From Oculina patagonica (taxonomy: Eukaryota): DNA of 64,000 nucleotides. Shown here one piece after another: positions 13,777 through 34,065 of the stretch. Location of the stretch: positions 6,262,001 to 6,326,000 of the forward strand of contig NC_135766.1 of NCBI RefSeq assembly GCF_052425735.1. The letters run 5' to 3'. The notes under the pieces are model-generated. The model worked only from the letters and a program-made list of their open reading frames with translations, was not told the origin of the DNA and did not search any database. Positions within the stretch are counted from its first letter, which is position 1. Each line of letters starts with the position of its first letter. The translations under genes were made by a program, and so were the position numbers.

Positions 13777-13993
13777 CAACCCTCCAATTTTTTTTTTTTA
13801 GTGGCCATTTGGCCACCGACTGCTCAAATTTTTTCGCCAGTGAAAAATTTTAGTCGCTAAATTAAGCTCACGCTTTCAATCCTTCTTCTCAATTTTGGTC
13901 ACCAGGCTGGCCGCGACTTTGGTTCCAATTTAGTCGCCACCTCCAAAGTTTTAGTCGCCATTGCAACTAAAATGGTCTTAACTTGGAGGGTTG
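13777..13993. mobile_element. ~217-bp MITE, same family as 28735-28952
   Basis: TIR CAACCCTCCAA/TTGGAGGGTTG; internal sequence collinear with 28735-28952. Confidence 0.85.
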
Positions 13994-14953
13994 CGAGAGG
14001 TCTAATGCTACCCAAAGTTTCAATTTACAAAATTTGCATGGACAAAAAAAAAAAAAAAACATAAAAACATAAAAACATAAAAAAATAATTAACTTGACAA
14101 GAAAGCCTCTGTTTATTTATATCTACAAAGTGTATTTCTACATTTCCTGATCTTACTTATTTTGACAATATTCACACTTAAACACCTGAGTGGAATTTTT
14201 TGGATAATTTTACTCTTTACCTTAAAAAGTAAAGTGGTTAGCTTATAACAGTACAGTGAAAATGTGAAAATTATTTTTTCTGACCTCTTTATGAGAGGTC
14301 TGAGTTCTAGCCCTGGTCAGGGTCTCTGAGCTGTAATATCAAGCAGGACACTTAACCCAGGAGTAGACACCGGTAGGGCAAATTATTAGAAATCCTGAAA
14401 ATTCTGGGGAGGAGGGGCAAAGGAAAAAGGTGAGAGGGAGGGTGAGGGATGGGGTAAGAAGGACAAGGGAAGGGGGAAGGGGGAGGGGAGGGGGCAAGGA
14501 GAAACGGGGAGGGGGATGGGGTTTGGTTTGCAATTGATTAGCTCCCCATTTAGTAAAGCACTAGCACTGATAAGTCATGTTACTACACCAATTCTTGGGA
14601 CTGGTGCAGGGTTTACCTTCACCATTTATACTGTAATCGAGCAGCTTATATGTTTTAAACAAATTCTTGATAAGAGAAGGTTGCTGTGCAGTTTATTAAA
14701 TTTAAGTGAAACTTGTTGAAACTATGTTTTAGCAATCTGTAAAAGCGAAAACTTTTCTGCTTGTCGTGTCGTTTTAGTGTGGAAGTAAACGCACTGAAGC
14801 TCAGGGATAAAAACTCTATTTCATGACTGATTACTGACCACAAATCGACAAATATACTACAAACAAGGATTTCATGTTAGTGCAAACGCTAGGTTAAGCT
14901 CTTCACCGACGAAACTTAACTCGACTTCAATCAGTTGGTAAGTTGCTTTTGTA

Positions 14954-20984: not shown

Positions 20985-21113
20985 NNNNNNNNNNNNNNNN
21001 NNNNNNNNNNNNNNNNNNNNNNNNNNNNNNNNNNNNNNNNNNNNNNNNNNNNNNNNNNNNNNNNNNNNNNNNNNNNNNNNNNNNNNNNNNNNNNNNNNNN
21101 NNNNNNNNNNNNN
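20985..21113. other. Assembly gap (N run)
   Basis: 129 N, followed closely by a long poly-C. Confidence 1.
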
Positions 21114-21557: not shown

Positions 21558-23135
21558 ATAATAATAATAATAATAATACTTTATTTATATAGCGCTATTT
21601 CTATTTCTAACCAATAGCGCTTTACAAGTTATTTACAATTAAAAATTACATATCTATATTAAAAAAGTTACAATTTGTATATAATAAAAAAAATAAAAGA
21701 TCAATAAAAGAACTAAAACGAATAAAAAGACTAACTAATTCACCTAAGTTAATTGTAAAAATACACTAAATTATAAAAATATCTAACTAAAGTTTGCGCT
21801 TAAACTCTGAAATGCCATTGCACGATCGAATTTCTAAAGGTAAGGCATTCCAGAGTTGTGGCGAGGCTACAGAAAAAGCTCGAAATCCGTAGCTGCGCAA
21901 ATTATAGGCGACGTCATCCAAGCGATGGCCATTCATGGAACGTAGATTACGTCTCGGAACATATCTCTTGATCATATCAGACAGATAAGTTGGGGCTAAG
22001 CCCATCAAACACTTGAATGTTATAAGAAGCAGCTTAAATATTATGCGCTCTTCAATAGGTAGCCAGTGAAGGTTATAAAGTACCGGTGTAATATGTTCAC
22101 ATTTTCGCGTAAGTGTCACAATCCGGGCTGCTACATTCTGAACATGCTGTAACTTCTTTAAAGTTTGTTTAGGCAGTCCAAACAAAAGTGAATTGCAGAA
22201 ATCTAATCTGGAGGATACAAATGCATGTACCAGCATTTCAGCAGTATGAAAACTTAAATATTTCCTAATGCGACTGATATTCCGAAGATGATAGAAAGCT
22301 GACTTGCAAATAGCAGTAATGTGGTTTTCCATGGACATAGATGTGTCGAAAATTACACCAATGTTTCTGGCTTTAGATGATAGGTCAATATCCTCATCAC
22401 AGACTGAAATAGACGTCAGTGGGGGGAGTGGACGATGACGAGCCTTCAAGACAAGTAACTCGGTCTTGTCCCTGTTCATCTTTAACATGTTTGCCGTCAT
22501 CCAAGTATCAATGTCACGCACACAAGCCTCCATCGCCGCTTTAGCCATCTCAGGGGACGATTTAAAGGTGAGATACAGCTGCGTGTCATCAGCGTAAAGG
22601 TGGAACTTGACCTGATGATGCCTCATGATATCACCTAATGGGGACGTGTAGAGCAGGAATAGAATGGGTCCGACTACCCTGAGGTACACCACAGCGGAGC
22701 TCACGACGGGAAGACTGACTTCCATTTACTTTCACGACTTGATGTCGGTCAGACAGATATGATCGGAACCACCCCAAAGCGTTGTCTACGATACCAAACC
22801 GTTGTGACAGACGATCTAATAGGATACGATGATCAACAGTATCAAATGCTGCTGAAAGGTCAAGTAGCAGCAGAATTACACAACAGTTGTTATCAATTGC
22901 CCGAAGAATATCATCTTGAACTTTGATCATCGCCGTTTCAGTGCTGTGGTACTGTTTATATGCTGACTGATAAAGTTCGTTTAAGTTGTTATCCTCAACG
23001 TGTTGACATGTCTGAGCTGCAACAACTTTTTCGACACATTTGGAAATGAAAACCAGGTTAGAAACTGGGCGAAAGCTGCTAAATTCTTCATAAGGCAGAG
23101 TTTGCTTCTTAAGAAGTGGATGCAATGAAGCCTTT
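21558..23135 (-). mobile_element. L2-group LINE 3' part (reverse transcriptase, frameshifted; (TTA)n tail)
   Basis: ORFs 22631-23125 and 21787-22725 contain FRPVSNL, LLDLSAAFDTVDH, GVPQGS, YADDTQLY and LHWLPIEERI; frameshift near 22680; 3' end gcgctatataaataaagtattattatta. Confidence 0.95.
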
Positions 23136-24272: not shown

Positions 24273-24821
24273 TATAAGAACAGAGAGAGGAGAGAGGATT
24301 GGTAACAAAGCACATGCGACAGGTCACGTGAGGTATTTGTATTTGCCTGTCCGCCATCTTGGTCGCGCGATTGTGAACTTGTGAGTATTTTCTTGTAGCG
24401 AGAAGCCTTGACTTCAAGATTTGTAGCTGTTATATTTTTGCGCTCACCTACAAACACATAAAGAACTCGTAGTGCACACATACAGCTAAATCGACATACT
24501 CGCACACGAGATAGGTCGAGGGTCTACATAAATTGTGGTTTACGCATCGAGCTCTACGCTACGTGTCGGTGAGCTGTTTTGGTCAGACCCTGTCCTGTCA
24601 TAACTGAAGTTGAACTGAATATAACCATTGAAAGCAATATAAACACTGTCAGAATTGAAATATTTGTCATCTTAACTACTGGCGACATTGTGATTTGAGC
24701 TTAACTGAAGACGTGATCAGTACAGAAGAAGTTTACTATCAAAACTGCTGAGATTGCAAAAGATAGAAAGGTGAGCTATCTAAGTTTTATTTGCTTGAAC
24801 GTGTATTAACTACCGTAGGTT

Positions 24822-27610
24822 ATGGTGTCTTTAATGCAATATAGAGCAGCAGTGGGGTTACATGACGTTCATTTGAAGGCCAAAGAATACTCGGATCGTA
24901 TGAAAGGGAAATTCTGGTCTATGCTGTTGTTTATGTTTTACCTGGAAGCGATATATCTGCCAACATTAAAAAGAGTAATCCGTTCATGGCAAATGGCTTA
25001 TTACGCTAGGCTTTGGTTTACACAAATTTGTCTTTATCGTTTCTATATTCCCTTGTTGATTCGACTTGCCAATGATGTTGAGATGAATCCTGGCCCTTTT
25101 TACGTTGTGAATTCGTCAAAAACTGTCACGGCTGACTATAATCAAGGTGATGTTGCACTGTTTGGAAGAAATGCTGGCAACCAATGCGTAGCGATGTGCC
25201 TAACTGCAGTTGTTTACAATTGTAAAAATAATGCATCGTGGTCAAGAGATCAGCTAAATGAAGTTTTGATTCAAGGCAATGTGCTTTATTCTCATATTAG
25301 CAAGTCAGTAGGGAAAGACAGATTGTTGCTATCTGAGATTCCATCTGCATTGTCCATAAATGACGAAAACTTTTCCATTAATTTTAGCAGCAGTTTTGCT
25401 GGCGATTTACACATGTCTGATGTAAGAGACTGTTTTTTCCCATTGCAACATGTACTAAATATGTTAATAAAAGACTATGATGCCTTTCTGTTGACTGTTG
25501 AAATCAATACGGTTGCTATTATTATTGACAACAAAGGTAATTATAGAATTTTTGATTCTCATTCACGAGATATCCATGGTAACATTGCTGCAAATGGAAC
25601 AGCAGTACTGTTGGAATTTACTAGTGTACAGGAAATGGTGCAGTATCTGCAAAACTTCTACAGAGAAAAGAATGTAGTGCCATTTGAAGTGTTGGGTATG
25701 AAAGTTGAAAATTTATCAGTTAATCAAAATTGCAGGTACACAAGTTCTAGTGCTCTAAGTGTACCATTTTCTACAACAGATAACACTGTAGGGTGCCAGG
25801 GATCATGCAGTCAAAGTCAATGTCACAATTTTGAATCAGACATAAGAAAAGAAAATGTAGTTAACAATAGCAGAAAGAGAAAACAAGCACAATCAGAAGA
25901 ACACAAAGAAAGCTTGCTGATGTTTAGAGAAAAGAAAACTGCAAGGAAAGAAGCTGAAACATGTGGTGAAAGGAACAATATGTCACAAATGTATAGAGAA
26001 CAGTATGATAGAAAAAAAGCAATTGAAACCAAAGAGCAGAGAGAAAATAGGTTAAGAAAGCCCAAGGAACAAAGAATTAAAAAAAAGAAAATTGAGAGCA
26101 AAGAACAAAGAGAGGATAAATTAAAGAAGCATCGAGAACTAATGAGAAAAAGACGAGAAACTGAAACCGAACAGCAGAGAGAAAATAGGTTGAAAGAGAG
26201 AAGAGAACGATATAGGAAAAGCAAGGAAACTGAAACTAAACAGCAGAGAGAAAATAGGTTGCAAGAGAGAAGAGAACGATATAGGAAAAGCAAGGAAACT
26301 GAAACCAAAGAGCAACGAGAAAAAAGATTAAAGACAAAAAGGGAATTAAAACAAAGAGTAAAGGAAACTGAAACTAAACAACAAAAAGAGGAGAGGTCGA
26401 TTAAAAGAAGAGAAGCTTACAAGGCCAAAAAGGGTTGTGATAATGACAAAACACAAAAATCTTGTGATGAATTGGTTGTTATTTTTCGTGAACTGGTTGC
26501 TTCAGGGCCAACGTTTGTTTGCACATGTTGTGAGCAGTTATGGTACAAACATAGTCTTGTCAGAACTGATACTGTACTAAAACTTAATAACGAAGCTGTA
26601 TTAAGATGCATAAGAAAAGATGAACAGTGTTGTACAGCTCAATGGGTTTGTCATACATGTTATAATCACCTGAAGCAGAATAAAGTGCCTCCATGTGCAG
26701 TCCAGAATAAAATGAGTTTTCCACATAAACCTGACCATTTAGACTTAACAGAACTAGAGTGGAGGCTTGTATCACCACGATTGATCTTTCAAAAGATACA
26801 CGAAGCAGCTAGGGGAAAGCAATATAAAATTCATGGCAACATAGTGAATGTTCCTGCTGATGTTGTTAATACTGTGAATATCTTACCAAGACTATCAACT
26901 GAAACAGACACTATCAAAGTGCAGCTTAAGAGAAAATTAAAATACAAGAACTATGTCCTGTCTCAAAACATAAGACCATCCAAAGTTTTTGAAGCAGCTA
27001 AGTGGTTGACTGAAAATGGTGCACTTTACAAGAAAGAAAGTATCAAACTGGACCCAGATTGGAATGGTTTGTTTGCAGGGTCTAATGAAAATGACATGTC
27101 AAATGATAGTGCTTGCAGCAGTTCAAGCAACCTTACAGAAAACAATACACCTATAGCTTCAATTAAGTCACTGAATACCACTGTGCAATCTTTTTCAGAA
27201 CACAGTCGATTGCTTTCATTTCAATTTGGTAAAGTTTTTATTTGCCTTGACTGTGAACAAGTTTTAATAGACTCAATGAATTTAGAAAATCATCTTTTGT
27301 ATGATCATGGAGTAGAAACTGATACTGAGTGTTGTGAGGAGAGTAACTATATTCCATTTTTTCATAAAAATGACTGTAATAGTAATGAAGTGGTTTTCTT
27401 TTGTTCTTTGTGTAGTGCCTGGGAAAAAGAGCAATCACTTTTTAGTGAACACATGGCCATTGTACATGATCTACCACCAATGGAAGATGATGCATCCTCT
27501 CAATTCAGTGAAGCAACAGCTAATGTAAGTACTTCCGTTGTGGTCAAACTGTTCAGATATAAAATGCTTGATCCCAAAAATGTTGTTCTTGTAGAAACAT
27601 GTTTGAAAGG
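24822..27610 (+). pseudogene. Helentron polyprotein N-terminal part: leader, 2A motif, C76-like cysteine protease, STPR-like repeats, Cys-rich (DUF6570-like) domain, two C2H2 fingers
   Basis: ORF 24822-27659 contains DVEMNPGP; NQGD...GNQCVAMC...FDSHSR; ETETEQQRENRLKERRERYRKSK 23-aa repeats; CTCC...CHTC...GNIVNVP; interrupted by a MITE at 27611. Confidence 0.9.
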
Positions 27611-28571
27611 CAGGGTCCGAAATTGCGCCTTCCTGGTCGCCAATGCGACTAAATATTGAGAGCTGGCGACCAGAATTTCACAACTGATCGCCCACTGGCG
27701 ACTAAGTTGCTTTGTAAGAGTATTCAGAGAAATTGATTAAAAATAAAATTCGGAGCCGTTTTTTAACAATTTATTGACTCACTTTTTATCTTAGTGATGT
27801 CCTTGAGATAACACTGAAGTAAATTTCTCGCTACATAATGTATAAACTCCCCAACAGCTCAGCCAACAGCTGCGATCAACGCGATTCGAACATTGCAAGC
27901 CGCCATGTTGTTTTCCTCAGCGGTTTTCCCCATGACACTATTGCGGGCGCGCCCAGACATGTGCTTTCTTTCGCATGCAATGGTCTATGCAATGAATATT
28001 CATTCTGGCGATGTCATGTCCGCGGACACGCTGAAATATTTCCATCATTTACTTGAAACTGGTAAGGCTACAGATGCAAAAAACTTTGTGGAAGATTTAG
28101 ATATTTCCAATTACATGCCAGGCTACTAAGCTACGACGTTCCACGAACGCAACACGTTCTTGTTGTCACTGTGTTGAATGAAAAACTACCTGTCGAAATA
28201 TGTCAGAAAGTTGGTGGAAATGATGTTTTTTATATTATTAAAGAGCGGAATGTTTGGGTAAGACTGTAAAGTATTTTCCGTTTAAATGTTAGAGAGTTAA
28301 CATTCGATAAAGAAGACTTTTTAAGACTCTACTTATAGGCGGGTACAGCATTTCTTTGAGTGATTGTCATCGTTGTTTTGTGGTATAAGTAAGCTGTTTT
28401 TGAGCATATGAATGGCCAAAAATACACAAGAAGAACAAGTGTTTCGTCTTTTAAGTGTAAAAGGAAAGTCAATCGAAAAACATTGGCGACCTGAAGTTGC
28501 CATCTGGCGACTAAAACTTTCGGTCCGGTCGCCAGGTGGCGCCGATGTAAAAAATTTAATTTCGGACCCTG
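27611..28571. mobile_element. 961-bp non-autonomous TIR element with 5-bp TSD (hAT5-like)
   Basis: aaagg|CAGGGTCCGAAATT...AATTTCGGACCCTG|aaagg; subterminal GTCGCC/GGCGAC motifs. Confidence 0.92.
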
Positions 28572-28734
28572 AAAGGGTATGGATTAGCAAACACTATTTC
28601 TCTTAAAGCGTTAGTAGGTATACCAGTAACTTTGAATGTATCAAGATGCTCATCTAGTGCAACAGATGTGCATTTATCTAGTAGAGATCTTTGTAAGGAT
28701 TCCTGTCCAACTGAAATGGAGGTAAATGACCCTT

Positions 28735-28952
28735 CAACCCTCCAAGTTTATTTTTTTCCTTAGTGGCCATTTGGCCACCAACTACTCAAGTTTGGTCGCC
28801 AGTGAAAAATTTTAGTCACCAAATTAAGCTGATGCTTTCAATCTTTCCTCCCAATTTTAGTCGCCAGGCTGGCGACCTTGGTTCAAATTTAGTCGCCAGC
28901 TCCAAAATTTTGGTCGCCATGGCGACTAAAATGGTCTTAACTTGGAGGGTTG
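28735..28952. mobile_element. 218-bp MITE with 5-bp TSD
   Basis: ccctt|CAACCCTCCAAGTT...AACTTGGAGGGTTG|ccctt; excision restores ...VNDPWNEVDE. Confidence 0.92.
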
Positions 28953-30348
28953 CCCTTGGAATGAAGTGGATGAATCTGAAATGTGTGCTGGTACTTTGGA
29001 CACAATGTTAACATCCCCGGACTTTGTAGAAGATTGTGAACGTGAAAAGGTTTTGAACTTTGCACCAGGTGAAAGCAATCATCCAATTAGTATTTTCAAA
29101 GACCAATATTGCGAAGAGCTAGCATATCCTGGTATATTCTGTGGTCACGCAAGAGCAGATAATAAGGAAAGAAATGTACCTGTGTATTATAGTGACATTT
29201 GCAAATCAGAGTTAAGGCGTTCTGATCGTAGAGTTGCTCAGTGTATGGAAAATATTTTCTTTAAACTGAAAAAGCTGCAAATGAAAATAATTTTAGGCAA
29301 GTGCCAGATTGCATTGCGAAAGCATAAAACAAATGGAAAGAGACTAACAGCAGGCGAGTTAAAAAAAGAAGGTGCTTTAGACAAATTAGTTCATTTGAAT
29401 GAAGGGTACCGATTTCTAAGAGCTCTTCGTGGTTCCCCACCATACTTTGAGAAGTCTAAGAGAGATCTATTTGCCATGATAAGGCAACTTGGATCTGCGA
29501 CACTTTTTTGTAGCTTTTCTGCAGCTGAAACAAAGTGGAATCATCTGTTAAGAATGTTAGGTGAATTAATTGATCACCAAGTATACAGAGATGATGAATT
29601 AAATGCCTTGTCATGGGAGGAAAAGTCAAGGTTAATTCAAAGTGATCCCGTCACATGTGCAAGGCATTTTGATTTCCAAGTTCAGCAACTAATTGTAAAA
29701 TTTTTGCAAAGTGATTGTGCACCACTGGGGAAAATAGCAGATTGGTTTTATCGAGTTGAATTTCAACAACGTGGCTCGCCACACATTCATATGCTTTTAT
29801 GGATTGAAGGTGCACCAAAGTTTGGTGAAGATTCAGACGAAAAAGTTTGTGAATTTGTTGATAAAATCATTTCTTGTTCAAAACCTGCAAGTGGCTGTGA
29901 ACTAGATGAATTAGTTTCTCGTCAAGAACATAAACATTCATTTACCTGTAAAAAGAAGTTTCAAAAACAGTGCAGATTTAATTTTCCTCAGCCTCCAATG
30001 AAAAGCACTCAAATATTGTATCCTTTAAGTGACATTGAGAATACAAGTCTTTTGAATCAACACAAGGCTACTTGGAAAGAAATCAATGAAAAACTTAATA
30101 CTATGAGGGAAGGAGAGAATATTTCATTTGAAAAACTTCTTAATGAACTTGCGGTCGCTGAAGAAGAATATATTCTGGCTATTCGATCTTCCCTAAGTAG
30201 GGCAACAATTTTTTTGAAACGAAAGCCAAACGAACTTCGAATCAATAATTATAACAAGCACTGCTTGCTTGCATGGAGAGCAAACATGGATGTCCAATTT
30301 ATCCTAGATATCTACTCTTGTGCAACATATGTTGTTTCTTACGTATAA
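28953..30348 (+). pseudogene. Helentron HUH Rep domain
   Basis: LFAMIRQLGSATLFCSFSAAE, FYRVEFQQRGSPHIHMLLW (HUH), YSCATYVVSYV*K (Y2 motif broken by in-frame TAA at 30346-30348). Confidence 0.95.
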
Positions 30349-30363
30349 AAGGCACAGAGAGGT

Positions 30364-33300
30364 ATGAGTGAACTTTTGAGAAAAGCATGTGAGGAAGCTC
30401 GAGAAGGAAATTTGAGTATTAAACAGCAAGTGCGTGACATCGGTAACAAATTCTTAAACAATGTTGAAATAAGTGCACAAGAGGCGGTATATATCGTACT
30501 TCAGTTACCAATGCGACGCTCCTCTCGTGAAGTGGTGTTTATCAATACAGCTTTACCAGATGAAAGAGTGTGTCTTTTGAAATCGATGGATGACATACAG
30601 CAGCTAGAAGATGAGTCTGAAGATATTGAATCAGGTGGCTTGATAAAAAGGTATACTAAAAGGCCATCTTGTCTAGAGAATGTGACATTAGCTGATTGGG
30701 CCGCTTGGTATGACAATAGGAATTCAAACCTTAAAAATCTACAAAAATCCAAAAATACTGATGTTGATGGTTTGCCATTAGAAATATTTGATGATGATAA
30801 CAATGAAGATGATGTTGGTAAAGACATTACTGATACATGTAGCAATGAGCTGACATCAAAGAAGGGCAAAAAAGAACCTCAGAAGCGGTCAAAAGCTAGG
30901 GTAATAAGAAGTGTATGGTTTAATAGAGAAAGTCATCCTGAAAAGCACTATCGTGAGCTGCTAATGTTATTTACTGCTTGGAGAGATGAAAATACTGATT
31001 TGCTAGGAGACTGTGAGAATTACATGGAGAGGTGTCAGATATTGAAAAAACAGATAAATGACCAAATGGCTCAGTATGCACCATGTAGTGAACAACTAGA
31101 GCAAGCATTAGATGATGTACAAACTATAGAAAGCACTGATGATATGTGGGATTGTGTAGCTCCAAACACACAACATGTAGAACTGAGTCACCTTGCAGAA
31201 AATGAATGTCAACATGTATGCAACACAGACGAAGTAGGGAACTATGATCTTTCTGGAGATCTGGGAATTCCTGCTAGTACTACTAGTAATTATGAACATA
31301 ATATCTCATTTGATGAATTGCCAGATGAAGAGTATAGGGAAGCTGTTCGTTCTCTAAATGTCGAGCAGTTAAATTTTTTCTACCATGTTTTACACCTTGT
31401 GAAGACAACCAGTGAACCCTTCTATTTGTTTCTTTCTGGTGGCGCTGGAGTTGGAAAATCTCACTTGACTAAAGTACTGTTTCAAGCAGTTTACAAATAT
31501 TTAAACACAAGAGCTGGTGTTGATTTTCATCAAATTACAGCTATTCTAGTTGCTCCGACTGGTAAAGCTGCCTATAATATTCAAGGAAGTACAATCCATA
31601 CAGCATTAGCAGTGCCAGCAAACCAGTCCTTAAAGATTTATAAGAAGCTTGATGCCAGTCGTTTGAATTCCTTGAGATGTAAATTTGCTGGTTTGAAGAT
31701 AATTTTCATTGATGAAGTATCAATGGTAGGAAATTCCATGTTTAATATTCAAATTAACAAAAGACTCCAAGATATCATAGGTACAGATAATGATTTTGGA
31801 GGAGTGAGTATTATAGCAGTTGGAGATTTGTTTCAACTTCAACCAGTATTTGATGGCTATGTTTTTGAAGATTTGGAGAATGATTATGCTCCTTTAGCAG
31901 CTAATCTGTGGCAGAAACATTTTCAGATGTTTGAATTACATGAAATTATGCGTCAAAGAGAGAGTTGCGAGTTTGCAGAAATTCTTAACCGGCTGCGTGA
32001 GGGTATTCACACTGAGAATGACTTGAATATACTGAGAGCAAGAATCGTTGAAGATCCTGATCAGAACTATCTCAGACATGCTCCCCACCTATTCATTCAA
32101 AATGACAGAGTTGATGAGTTTAACAAGTCAGTTTATAATTCTGCAGCTGGCAGAAAATTTATTGTCAAGGCAGTTGATAGTGTCATTGGTGCTCAGTCTG
32201 AGGAATTAAAGGCACGGCTATTGAAACAGGTTCCAGATGATCCACGAAAAACTATGCAATTAGCAGCCTGTCTTGCAATTGCAGAAAATGAAAGGATTGA
32301 GGTCTGTCAAAACATCAGATTGGATGATGGTCTTACGAATGGTAGTGCAGGTTTAGTGAGATTTATTAGTCTGCTAAATTCTGATTGTCCTGATGGAATT
32401 GTTTGGGTTGAATTTGATCATGCTAAAGTTGGAGAGAAAACTCGGAATGAAAATAGAAGCCTTTACAGTGATAATATCCAGCAGAGTTGGACACCAATAA
32501 AACCTGTTTGTGTAACATTTTTTGTAGGAAGAGGTAAAGCTGCTCAGATCGTTCGAAAACAATTTCCTTTACGGCAATCTGCAGGAAAAACTATTCACCG
32601 TTCTCAGGGTGACACTGAAACCAAGGTTGTAGTTGATCTTACTTCAAGAAGAGCTATTCCTCACATTCATTATGTTGCATTAAGCAGAGTTACTACCATT
32701 GATGGATTGCATATAAAGAATCTCAATGAAAAAAAGATAACTGTGAGTAACAAAGTTAAGAATGAAATGCAGAGATTGCGAACAGCAGCTTATCTTCAGC
32801 CGTCTATAATATCCCTTGCAGACATTGGTGAGAATTTTGTCAAGATAGTCTTTCTTAATGCACGTTCTCTTCACAAGCACATATCAGATGTGAAAAATGA
32901 TTTCAATGTTAAGGCAGCAGATATAAATATCTTTGTTGAAACTAGATTGTGGGTGTTTGACCAAAATGACGAATTTGAAATTAATGACTTCTCCTTGTTT
33001 AGAAACGATGCATTGTTTGATAGGCAGTTGCATACACAAAGACCATTCTATGGAACTGCAGTTTATACCAGAGCTCAGTGTTATGATGAATATCCTAAAT
33101 GTCAAAATATGCATGGAGTTGAAATAACAATTATTAAAGTTGAATGTCTGCCAGATGTTGTTATTGCTGGCATTTATAGATCACCAAAAGTGCCAATGAG
33201 ACATTTGCTTCAAGCATTGAGAGAACTTCATTCCATTATGTCAACAGAACGTTTTCATATAATACTTGGTGATTTTAACATTGATTTTAATGATGGTGTA

Positions 33301-33495
33301 CAAAACAGCAGTATACATAATCAAATGATTGTAACATATGGATATAAACAACTTATTTCAAGCTTTACCACTGATAACAGAACTACAATTGATCACATTT
33401 ATACAAATCTAAATGAATCAAGAGTCCAAACTGGTGTTCTCGAGACATACTTTAGTGACCATAAAGCTGTGTGGATAGCAACCAAAAAAGAGTAG
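30364..33495 (+). CDS. Helentron PIF1 (SF1B) helicase plus C-terminal APE endonuclease
   Basis: GGAGVGKS, APTGKAA, IIFIDEVSMV, GDLFQLQPV, TIHRSQG, YVALSR; then LNARSL, ETRL, IYRSP, GDFN, TIDHIYT, SDH. Confidence 0.96.
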   Translation: MSELLRKACEEAREGNLSIKQQVRDIGNKFLNNVEISAQEAVYIVLQLPMRRSSREVVFINTALPDERVCLLKSMDDIQQLEDESEDIESGGLIKRYTKRPSCLENVTLADWAAWYDNRNSNLKNLQKSKNTDVDGLPLEIFDDDNNEDDVGKDITDTCSNELTSKKGKKEPQKRSKARVIRSVWFNRESHPEKHYRELLMLFTAWRDENTDLLGDCENYMERCQILKKQINDQMAQYAPCSEQLEQALDDVQTIESTDDMWDCVAPNTQHVELSHLAENECQHVCNTDEVGNYDLSGDLGIPASTTSNYEHNISFDELPDEEYREAVRSLNVEQLNFFYHVLHLVKTTSEPFYLFLSGGAGVGKSHLTKVLFQAVYKYLNTRAGVDFHQITAILVAPTGKAAYNIQGSTIHTALAVPANQSLKIYKKLDASRLNSLRCKFAGLKIIFIDEVSMVGNSMFNIQINKRLQDIIGTDNDFGGVSIIAVGDLFQLQPVFDGYVFEDLENDYAPLAANLWQKHFQMFELHEIMRQRESCEFAEILNRLREGIHTENDLNILRARIVEDPDQNYLRHAPHLFIQNDRVDEFNKSVYNSAAGRKFIVKAVDSVIGAQSEELKARLLKQVPDDPRKTMQLAACLAIAENERIEVCQNIRLDDGLTNGSAGLVRFISLLNSDCPDGIVWVEFDHAKVGEKTRNENRSLYSDNIQQSWTPIKPVCVTFFVGRGKAAQIVRKQFPLRQSAGKTIHRSQGDTETKVVVDLTSRRAIPHIHYVALSRVTTIDGLHIKNLNEKKITVSNKVKNEMQRLRTAAYLQPSIISLADIGENFVKIVFLNARSLHKHISDVKNDFNVKAADINIFVETRLWVFDQNDEFEINDFSLFRNDALFDRQLHTQRPFYGTAVYTRAQCYDEYPKCQNMHGVEITIIKVECLPDVVIAGIYRSPKVPMRHLLQALRELHSIMSTERFHIILGDFNIDFNDGVQNSSIHNQMIVTYGYKQLISSFTTDNRTTIDHIYTNLNESRVQTGVLETYFSDHKAVWIATKKE

Positions 33496-34065
33496 AAACA
33501 TGTACATTTTTGTAGGCTATAATGACTAGTAAATGATTAACCTTTTATGCCCCATCATCCACATACAAATTCTCCTGACTGATCTCCATACATTTTCGTA
33601 TAGCAATTGTTTGGAGAATTTGTTAAAAGTTCAAAGCAATTTCCCTTTGGTGACCATTTTATTACAGTGTAATTCTCCTAACCTCTTCTCTTAATTTAGT
33701 ATTGACATTGTGAGGAGAAATTTGTAATGATCACTATTAGGTCTTAAGGAAGCATAAATTACATGTAAAGTATGTGTTTCAGAAAGAAAGAAAATTTAAA
33801 TGAATTTAGTATCTACTTGTGTTACATTTTAAGGTGTTGTAGTTCATCAGCCTTGGTGTCTAAATAAATTTGTGTAACGGCTCCTTTGAGTCCCTTGTGA
33901 CCATTTGGGTCACACACCCCTCCTTGTGACCCTTTGGGTCACAAACCCACCATATTGCAACTGTACTTATTAGGTAAGTATACGAACAGTACACAATGTA
34001 GTTATTTGTTGTTCTGGTCCATGTAATTACACATGTATGTTAATAATGATCGATGTGACATCTAA

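Follow-up and report, generated by a model that had tools for sequence, protein, structure and literature searches.

A 2A-like sequence behind a conserved leader peptide at the head of a Helentron reading frame in Oculina patagonica

Recoding by StopGo (2A) sequences has been described in RNA viruses, non-long terminal repeat (non-LTR) retrotransposons and a few cellular genes. Here, a canonical 2A-like sequence is described in the first open reading frame (ORF1) of a Helentron found in the cnidarian Oculina patagonica, within a 64-kb stretch of contig NC_135766.1 (assembly GCF_052425735.1, positions 6,262,001 to 6,326,000), which is referred to as the window and to whose positions all coordinates given below refer. 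The motif closes an N-terminal leader peptide and is followed by a deubiquitinase (DUB). Its comparison with known 2As and with its relatives suggests that it very probably is a functional StopGo site, which would release the leader as a separate peptide from a DUB-led transposase.

The viral 2As (F2A of foot-and-mouth disease virus as well as P2A and T2A) share with the Helentron sequence the C-terminal D(V/I)ExNPG/P, a Leu-rich LL(K/I)(L/R)LA tract upstream of it and a location in frame with a polyprotein. They differ from it in that the host in the present case is a cellular DNA transposon, that 43 of the 53 family members have Asn instead of Gly at position 11, and that the Helentron site is found at the extreme N-terminus behind a dedicated 70-amino-acid (aa) leader and does not lie between large proteins as in viruses. 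In cnidarians and other marine invertebrates, the N-terminal 2As of APE-type non-LTR elements, which were active in translation assays, are likewise found tens of residues from the N-terminus of a polyprotein with enzymatic domains (Odon et al. 2013, PMC3708506). Unlike these elements, the Helentron is a rolling-circle DNA transposon, in which Pfam identified DUB, Rep, helicase and APE domains and no reverse transcriptase (RT); its 2A precedes a deubiquitinase instead of an APE or a PHD finger, and its APE is located far C-terminally and is not detectably closer to the APE of the long interspersed nuclear element (LINE) L043 than any two APEs are to each other. A further likeness exists with the 2A signal sequences of sea-urchin NLR proteins, in which the protein behind an N-terminal hydrophobic peptide ending in 2A is cytosolic or nuclear (Roulston et al. 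2016, PMC4981915). However, those are 26-aa signal peptides of immune receptor genes, whereas the Helentron leader comprises 91 aa, with a polar N-terminus and a hydrophobicity below the usual threshold.

As to the host element, a previous study demonstrated that the VTD (viral-tegument-like) domains of Helentrons are active deubiquitinases and described the order VTD DUB, Rep/Hel and APE with the same 8ADD fold as that considered here; it also noted that OTU domains replace the VTD in some Helentrons and that such elements occur in cnidarians (Erven et al. 2022, PMC9741609). No 2A is mentioned in the text of that study, in which the strings 'NPGP' and 'ribosom' occur 0 times. The combination of a 2A with both a deubiquitinase and an enzyme of transposition in a single ORF was reported for LINE ORF2p proteins of algae and dinoflagellates (preprint PMC13405545), but these are protist retrotransposons with Josephin or OTU domains, and 'Helitron' and 'helicase' occur 0 times in the text. 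A full-text literature search, with subscription-only literature and Repbase notes outside its scope, returned no paper pairing NPGP or '2A-like' with Helitron, Helentron or rolling-circle terms, and the literal family strings xNDVExNPGP were absent from the papers in that search. Two 2026 preprints that catalogue thousands of 2As from eukaryotes and reverse-transcribing elements leave Helitrons and helicases unmentioned in their main text, while their supplementary tables, outside the scope of the search, may list such peptides unannotated. Within the literature searched, this would be the first 2A found in a DNA transposon, and it would add a further class of host elements to those known for canonical 2As, the conserved leader forming with it a putatively transferable cassette.

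The original prediction, made from the letters of the window, had placed a 2A-like motif at 25074-25097 behind a leader with a hydrophobic stretch, and translation of 24822-25400 (+) reproduced the quoted peptide exactly. The leader terminates in LLIRLANDVEMNPG/P, residues 78-92 being LLIRLANDVEMNPGP, and the D-x-E-x-NPGP core reads DVEMNPGP (aa 85-92), with the predicted skipped bond lying between Gly91 (25092-25094) and Pro92 (25095-25097), at the junction 25094/25095. The reading frame stays open for 853 codons past the 2A. NPGP occurs a single time across the six frames of the 64-kb window; in 200 shuffled windows, a mean of 0.315 NPGP was found in each, and D.E.NPGP in none of them (0/200). 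In our own position-by-position comparison with the published F2A, 10 of the last 15 residues were identical, the upstream tract being LLIRLAN in the window and LLKLAG in F2A, and the core differing at position 11 (N, where F2A has G) and at position 15 (M, where F2A has S). Both substitutions can be read against a saturation mutagenesis of F2A and P2A (preprint 10.64898/2026.09.24.754024), in which D12, E14, N16 and NPGP were intolerant and V13 accepted I only, while position 15 was permissive, including for M, and G11 specifically tolerated N.

A protease had been predicted directly behind the 2A, and this proved real and, more exactly, a deubiquitinase. Pfam Herpes_teg_N (PF04843) matched ORF1 aa 107-276 with 50 bits against a cut-off of 25, and the sequence matched PDB 8add_A, the VTD DUB of a zebrafish Helitron, with an E-value of 1.8e-10. 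In Foldseek, the AlphaFold model of the domain reached a TM-score of 0.85 to 8ADD and of 0.73 to the cytomegalovirus M48 USP/DUB. By sequence and predicted fold, the domain following the 2A is a VTD deubiquitinase, whose predicted catalytic Cys122 is found in GNQC (codon 25185-25187) and which also contains an FDSHSRD motif. The distance from Pro92 to the catalytic Cys is 30 aa in the window and ranges from 27 to 33 (median 30) across 34 VTD relatives.

A word-based protein search with aa 1-300 as query returned 13 proteins, the closest being from the stony coral O. patagonica itself (90% identity) and others from the octocoral Paramuricea clavata; ORF1 had 4675 hits in an exhaustive HMMER search. 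A 2A-like motif was found in 31 of 163 relatives' proteins examined, and a leader-profile scan of metagenome contigs added 37 further loci, most of them apparently from metagenomes associated with corals. Among 53 distinct Helentron-linked 19-mers, selected by a motif-like pattern, the canonical D[VI]ExNPGP was present in 48; position by position, P17, P19 and E14 were found in all 53, and D12, N16 and G18 in 52 each. Position 13 was V or I in 51 of the 53 and position 15 was free (T, E, V, S, K or M); upstream of the core, Asn predominated at position 11, as mentioned above, and L6, L9 and A10 in 35-40 sequences. The 2A was kept while the flanking domains fell to 30-40% identity. Since this family profile matches the constraints defined by the saturation mutagenesis, the motif is conserved as expected of a working 2A.

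Because those 19-mers had been selected by the motif, a second count was made from the VTD active-site motif alone. In this case, with a selection blind to the 2A, a 2A was found within 45 aa of the VTD catalytic site in 23 of the 30 sites having at least 45 aa upstream, so that conservation among related elements, which the original prediction had made a touchstone, was borne out by both counts. The 7 exceptions comprise P0187 and P0188, which are degenerate second copies of a tandem arrangement (ATVIERNPGP); P0112, with the relic NDVHEDPGP; P0127 from medaka (Oryzias), with no canonical 2A ahead of its VTD and a possible relic; and the crinoid (Antedon) protein P0163 and two sites in P0027, all without a recognisable 2A. 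Separately from this count, no 2A was found ahead of the near-N-terminal VTD of the Amphiura protein P0135, and the pattern scan gave no motif match in P0058 from Nerophis, which makes the latter, with Oryzias P0127, a sampled fish relative that lacks the canonical 2A at this site, unlike the window element. The carriers of the 2A include corals, an octocoral and the nemertean Lineus longissimus (P0020), and therefore the feature is not limited to Cnidaria.

In the favoured mechanism, the nascent 2A tract would act within the ribosomal exit tunnel and block formation of the Gly91-Pro92 bond at ...DVEMNPG-P. The leader would then be released, ending in NPG, and translation would go on from Pro92. 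A single ORF would in this way give rise to two products, namely a free leader and a transposase with an N-terminal Pro located 30 residues before the VTD catalytic Cys; in intact relatives, the second product would extend through DUF6570, Rep, the PIF1 helicase and APE. In the AlphaFold model, a helix runs to aa 82, and the 2A core (aa 84-91) is predicted as a linker (predicted local distance difference test, pLDDT, <50) between the helical leader and the well-folded DUB. The occurrence and efficiency of skipping are inferred from sequence, and the leader may act as a separate small protein, with membrane association and control of transposase dosage or localisation as candidate roles.

Several points weigh against this mechanism. 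In the mutational scan, L6 and L7 were largely intolerant, and acceptance of Ile was left unstated there (10.64898/2026.09.24.754024); the window has Ile at position 7, where the family has Leu or Ile. A previous study reported that all 2A-like sequences of Nematostella vectensis non-LTR elements are mutated at key motif residues and that the two tested were both inactive (PMC3708506). Therefore, a 2A-like sequence in a cnidarian element is by itself no proof of activity; the motif described here, however, is canonical. Additionally, there are fish and echinoderm VTD Helentrons in which the 2A is absent or found as a relic only, and so the 2A is dispensable for Helentron transposition and is not universal. 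Finally, the window copy is damaged, as detailed below, so that a full transposase is probably not expressed from it.

The leader itself is under purifying selection at the protein level. Its start codon at 24822 is the first ATG after an in-frame stop two codons upstream, and no other ATG was found in the preceding 160 nt, the 5' untranslated region (UTR) having none in 24660-24821. The leader starts as MVSLMQYRAAVGLH, beginning with MV, and its N-terminal motif in the window is M-x-S-L-x-Q-Y-R-x-x-V-G-x-H, whereas the family motif is M-x-x-S-[LI]-x-x-Y-R-x-x-[IV]-G-x-H, which, together with the start Met, aligns across families at 30-50% identity; M1, Y7, R8, G12 and Y40 were invariant in 13 diverse leaders. 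The ratio of nonsynonymous to synonymous divergence (dN/dS) was calculated by the Nei-Gojobori method for aa 1-76 between the window and its relatives, giving 0.155 against L003 (dS 0.58), 0.068 against L005 and 0.075 against L001, the last two with dS near saturation. This range of 0.07-0.17, obtained among copies as the original prediction had proposed, points to purifying selection on the protein; the VTD domain showed 0.23-0.26 in the same pairs and aa 77-92 showed 0.13-0.25. Since amino acids were kept while synonymous sites had diverged or become saturated, the constraint acts on the protein and not on terminal cis-acting DNA. From a 27-sequence alignment, AlphaFold predicted two leader helices (residues 4-27 and 31-82) with pLDDT 67-79.

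N-terminal myristoylation, whose consensus is G-x-x-x-[ST], was considered for the MG... start found in relatives and was rejected, as the window leader starts with MV and the consensus is not matched by the relatives that start with MG. Just upstream of the leader (24765-24821), the sequence AAAGGTGAGC, found some 50 nt ahead of the start codon, is invariant in three diverged copies, and TAG/GT is found just before the ATG in the window; these resemble the two splice sites (donor and acceptor) of a small intron in the 5' UTR.

It had also been proposed that the MVSLMQYRAAVGLH start resembles the leaders of LINE 2As, and this resemblance held. Two LINE examples were recovered, and only two. 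In L043 (157-3573), an 81-aa leader that opens with MGISIVAYRAQIGLH and closes with SSGDIEANPGP is followed by APE (aa 95-254) and RT (aa 586-801) domains, while L042 (19-516) opens with MGVSLSQYRATIG, closes with LANDVEKNPGP and continues into an apparent APE start in a 166-aa fragment without Pfam confirmation. Both start with MG[IV]S[LI]..YRA.IG and have a 2A at their end. When the last 20 residues, which hold the 2A, were cut both from the Helentron profile and from the LINE leaders, L042 and L043 still scored 21.6 and 22.6 bits against the Helentron-leader hidden Markov model (HMM); none of 2000 shuffles of each LINE leader reached the real score (maximum 10.9), and the best unrelated ORF of 1577 in the window reached 11.8 bits. 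M1, Y7, R8 and G12 remained invariant after both LINE leaders were added. The shared motif MG[IV]S[LI]..YRA.IG.H is found 50-80 residues before the 2A, and would thus already have left the ribosome tunnel when skipping takes place. Word-based protein searches returned Helentron proteins only for the window leader alone (aa 1-95) and no matches for the L043 leader.

On the other hand, the proposal that the Helentron took its 2A cassette together with its APE from LINE-like donors found no support, as the window APE and the L043 APE share no significant pairwise similarity, and a transfer could have run from LINE to Helentron or the other way. The protein P0002 was considered as a LINE host of the leader, 2A and VTD together with an RT and was rejected, since its locus (L005:10001-12286) shows an RT element inserted in a Helentron copy, whose DUF6570 and Rep follow downstream; the leader of that copy is also cut by an in-frame stop (...KGKF*C). 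A scan of IMG/VR with the leader profile returned one locus, L008, in which the match is confined to the 2A core and which therefore gives no evidence for a viral source of the leader.

Within Helentrons, the leader and 2A were found ahead of three DUB types, namely VTD, OTU with GGAGDCFF and OTU with GDGNCLF. The intact relatives L016 and L017 have uninterrupted ORFs of more than 2000 codons with the order cassette, DUB, DUF6570 and Rep, the L017 ORF also reaching PIF1 and L016 holding three OTU domains. In L017 (847-7134, +), two tandem 2As 69 residues apart precede the VTD, the first being of the leader type (...LANDVETNPGP) and the second of a different class (...SADIERNPGP, with the upstream context VFKSLNQRV...), an arrangement that is only sensible if the 2As are functional. 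The residues behind each of these 2As are alike (VD..SKT..AP), as would result from a duplication of the 2A/VTD junction.

The second-class 2A was also found alone in other proteins, one of them from Oculina, often after long basic or transmembrane (TM)-containing N-terminal regions. In P0054, P0105, P0102 and P0111, long and very basic regions lie upstream of it (...VYKN.NHR......KLSGDIETNPGP); P0054, the one scanned among these four, had no Pfam family in this region. Some second-class proteins have strongly hydrophobic TM-like segments, with Kyte-Doolittle maxima over 19 aa (KD19) of up to 3.0.

The relationship between leader and transposase was also considered across lineages. Leader identity to the window was 54-60% where Rep identity was 21-31%, and 48-59% where Rep identity was 67-69%, with no correlation between the two (rho -0.37, p 0.24, n=12). 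Leader data rejected the Rep-tree grouping {window, L002, L023, L026} in the approximately unbiased test (p-AU 0.0002), while two further tree tests were not significant (leader data, p 0.127; reciprocal Rep data, p 0.113). These results are suggestive only of cassette exchange between Helentron lineages, a fast-evolving leader in the L023/L026 lineage being an alternative. A wider proposal is that the leader and 2A form a mobile, self-contained N-terminal expression cassette, swapped between LINEs and Helentrons and between Helentron lineages differing in their DUBs, and that the leader is a new small transposon protein with a function of its own, for instance as a membrane- or ribosome-associated regulator or as an antagonist of host defence, made in stoichiometric amounts with the transposase through StopGo. 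We regard this proposal, including the function assigned to the leader, as possible and put it forward tentatively.

The original prediction had suggested a small membrane or secreted peptide and tethered and free forms of the transposase. In this sense, the release of a leader by StopGo could also serve dual targeting, with the leader as a signal-anchor or membrane segment, so that unskipped chains would be tethered to the endoplasmic reticulum or other membranes and skipping would yield a nuclear-competent transposase plus a small membrane peptide. There is experimental precedent for this in the sea-urchin SpNLR 2As (PMC4981915), and the window leader has a hydrophobic, aromatic-rich segment at aa 31-49, after a basic stretch, which includes the hydrophobic stretch FWSMLLFMFYLEAIYL (aa 31-46). 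TM-like segments before the 2A are also found in P0142, P0054, P0039 and P0105, whose KD19 values are 2.4, 2.6, 2.7 and 3.0, respectively. However, the KD19 maximum of the window leader is 1.44, below the usual threshold of 1.6, and the leaders of relatives range from 0.68 to 3.0, those of the nemertean P0020 (0.68) and of P0117 (0.83) not being hydrophobic. Moreover, residues 1-30 are polar and basic and do not resemble a signal peptide, and the end of the 2A is at residue 92 instead of about residue 26 as in the SpNLR signal sequences. Dual targeting is therefore rather doubtful as the role of this leader.

Another proposal is that the 2A limits the downstream transposase by incomplete re-initiation, so that a Rep/Hel/APE protein with genotoxic potential would limit itself, and that the leader is dispensable. 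A 2026 preprint reported that most retrotransposon 2A-like sequences lower protein abundance, with this effect in 59-70% of the tested ORF2p and ORF1p cases (PMC13405545), and an N-terminal site would be ideal to gate everything downstream. Nevertheless, dosage control leaves unexplained both the strong purifying selection on aa 1-60, which are outside the exit tunnel when the ribosome arrives at NPGP, and the invariant N-terminal motif shared with LINEs, and it is unlikely.

VTD and OTU enzymes cut after the Gly-Gly C-terminus of ubiquitin. This bears on the proposal that no skipping takes place and that the NPGP tract is an inactive look-alike, serving as a structural linker or as another processing site, for example for the adjacent cysteine protease. 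The immediate vicinity of a protease domain and the mutated and inactive N. vectensis sequences mentioned above would fit such a tract, but cleavage by a VTD or OTU would fall after Gly-Gly and not after NPG. In addition, the motif of the window is fully canonical, its conservation follows the mutational landscape of 2As at each position, with position 15 free and V or I at position 13, and the same tract is found ahead of three unrelated DUB types and, in LINEs, of APE; hence, an inactive look-alike is very improbable. Finally, the notion that the leader is an artefact of annotation or a chance ORF extension, with translation starting past the motif and the leader being 5' UTR or terminal cis-acting DNA, draws on its distance of about 150-430 nt from the 5' end of the element, where cis-acting sequences are expected, and on the possible intron signal just upstream, but it is scarcely credible and largely refuted by the amino acids kept over diverged or saturated synonymous sites, by the start Met kept across families with no ATG upstream, and by the absence of any Met from residue 58 to the DUB catalytic site in the window ORF1.

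The features of the element are collected in Table 1. ORF1 (24822-27659, +) has 945 codons with its stop at 27657-27659. The assignment of the element to the Helentrons, which had been made in the original prediction, is upheld by the presence of Helitron_like_N, of PIF1 (77.5 bits) in the third ORF and of a C-terminal Exo_endo_phos (ORF3 aa 853-1033, E 7.5e-5), the last with 23 bits, just below the cut-off of 24.5; L001 has a homologous ORF with PIF1 and Exo_endo_phos. The termini of the copy were bracketed only through homology with L003 and L031. Homology to the deletion derivative L003 stops near 34057, which is the probable position of the 3' end, and the paired palindromes at 33897-33942 look like 3' subterminal hairpins.

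The spacer between ORF1 and the Rep ORF, which are in different frames, measures 1.28 kb and is missing from those relatives whose single ORFs are intact; in a tblastn search, the intact relative protein P0005 mapped to 24828-27086, with the next segment from 28870. A 220-bp repeat at the end of the spacer (28735-28953) recurs at 13777-13994 with 86% identity (blastn), and thus the spacer is, at least partly, another repeat. An in-frame stop at 30346-30348 lies in a conserved Rep region (...VVSYV*KAQRG...), the next ORF being in the same frame. This stop and the break after 27659 indicate that the window copy is no intact autonomous element.

Table 1. Coordinates of the Helentron copy and its parts in the window
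Feature	Position	Strand	Basis or remark
Helentron copy, decayed, cnidarian	~24668-34057	+	limits bracketed by homology with L003/L004 (internally deleted derivative) and L031
Approximate 5' end and 5' UTR	24668..24821	+	DNA homology to L003, L004 and L031 starts at ~24668-24742
Leader peptide, aa 1-91	24822..25094	+	translation; would end C-terminally in ...NPG
2A-like putative StopGo element, aa 74-92, 19-mer FYIPLLIRLANDVEMNPGP	25041..25097	+	core D85-P92 at 25074-25097
VTD (viral-tegument-like, herpes-tegument-like) deubiquitinase	25140..25649	+	Pfam PF04843, PDB 8ADD, Foldseek
DUF6570, usual N-terminal Helitron transposase domain (aa 619-746)	26676..27059	+	Pfam PF20209, 64 bits
Spacer without long ORF between ORF1 and Rep ORF	27660..28941	+	three-frame translation, tblastn, blastn
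Rep (HUH) part of transposase	28942..30348	+	Pfam Helitron_like_N, 97.8 bits
PIF1-like helicase (~31354-32010) and C-terminal APE endonuclease (~32920-33462)	ORF 30364..33495	+	Pfam
Two 17-nt perfect palindromes GTGACC(A/C)TTTGGGTCAC	33897-33913, 33926-33942	+	2 matches against 0 expected

Some further observations concern the surroundings of these features. Inside ORF1, tandem repeats at 25995-26414 encode a highly basic array of the ETETKQQRENRL... type (aa ~400-560), which gave a weak match to Pfam STPR, with stronger STPR matches in the relatives P0005 and L023. L003:153-983 and L004 represent the same internally deleted derivative of the window's Helentron family, in which the 5' end, the leader, a 2A with D replaced by Y (YVEMNPGP) and part of the VTD are joined straight to the 3' end and a palindrome. 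Just upstream of the Helentron, a separate retroelement fragment was found as a 312-aa ORF at 21787-22725 (-) with RVT_1 (E 4.6e-8), and a run of N occupies 20985-21113.

If the favoured mechanism is true, StopGo would be extended to DNA transposons through a conserved, canonical 2A that heads a rolling-circle transposase, and Helentrons would yield two proteins per ORF, which would change both the annotation of their gene content and the study of their expression. The family provides dozens of natural 2A variants, mostly with Asn at position 11, for testing models of the nascent chain in the exit tunnel, while the fixed spacing of 30 residues between the 2A and the DUB active site leads one to ask whether it matters to the enzyme that its N-terminus be a free Pro. 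Additionally, the three DUB types, the tandem case and the motif shared with LINEs point to an exchange of modules between transposon classes that inhabit the same marine invertebrate genomes.

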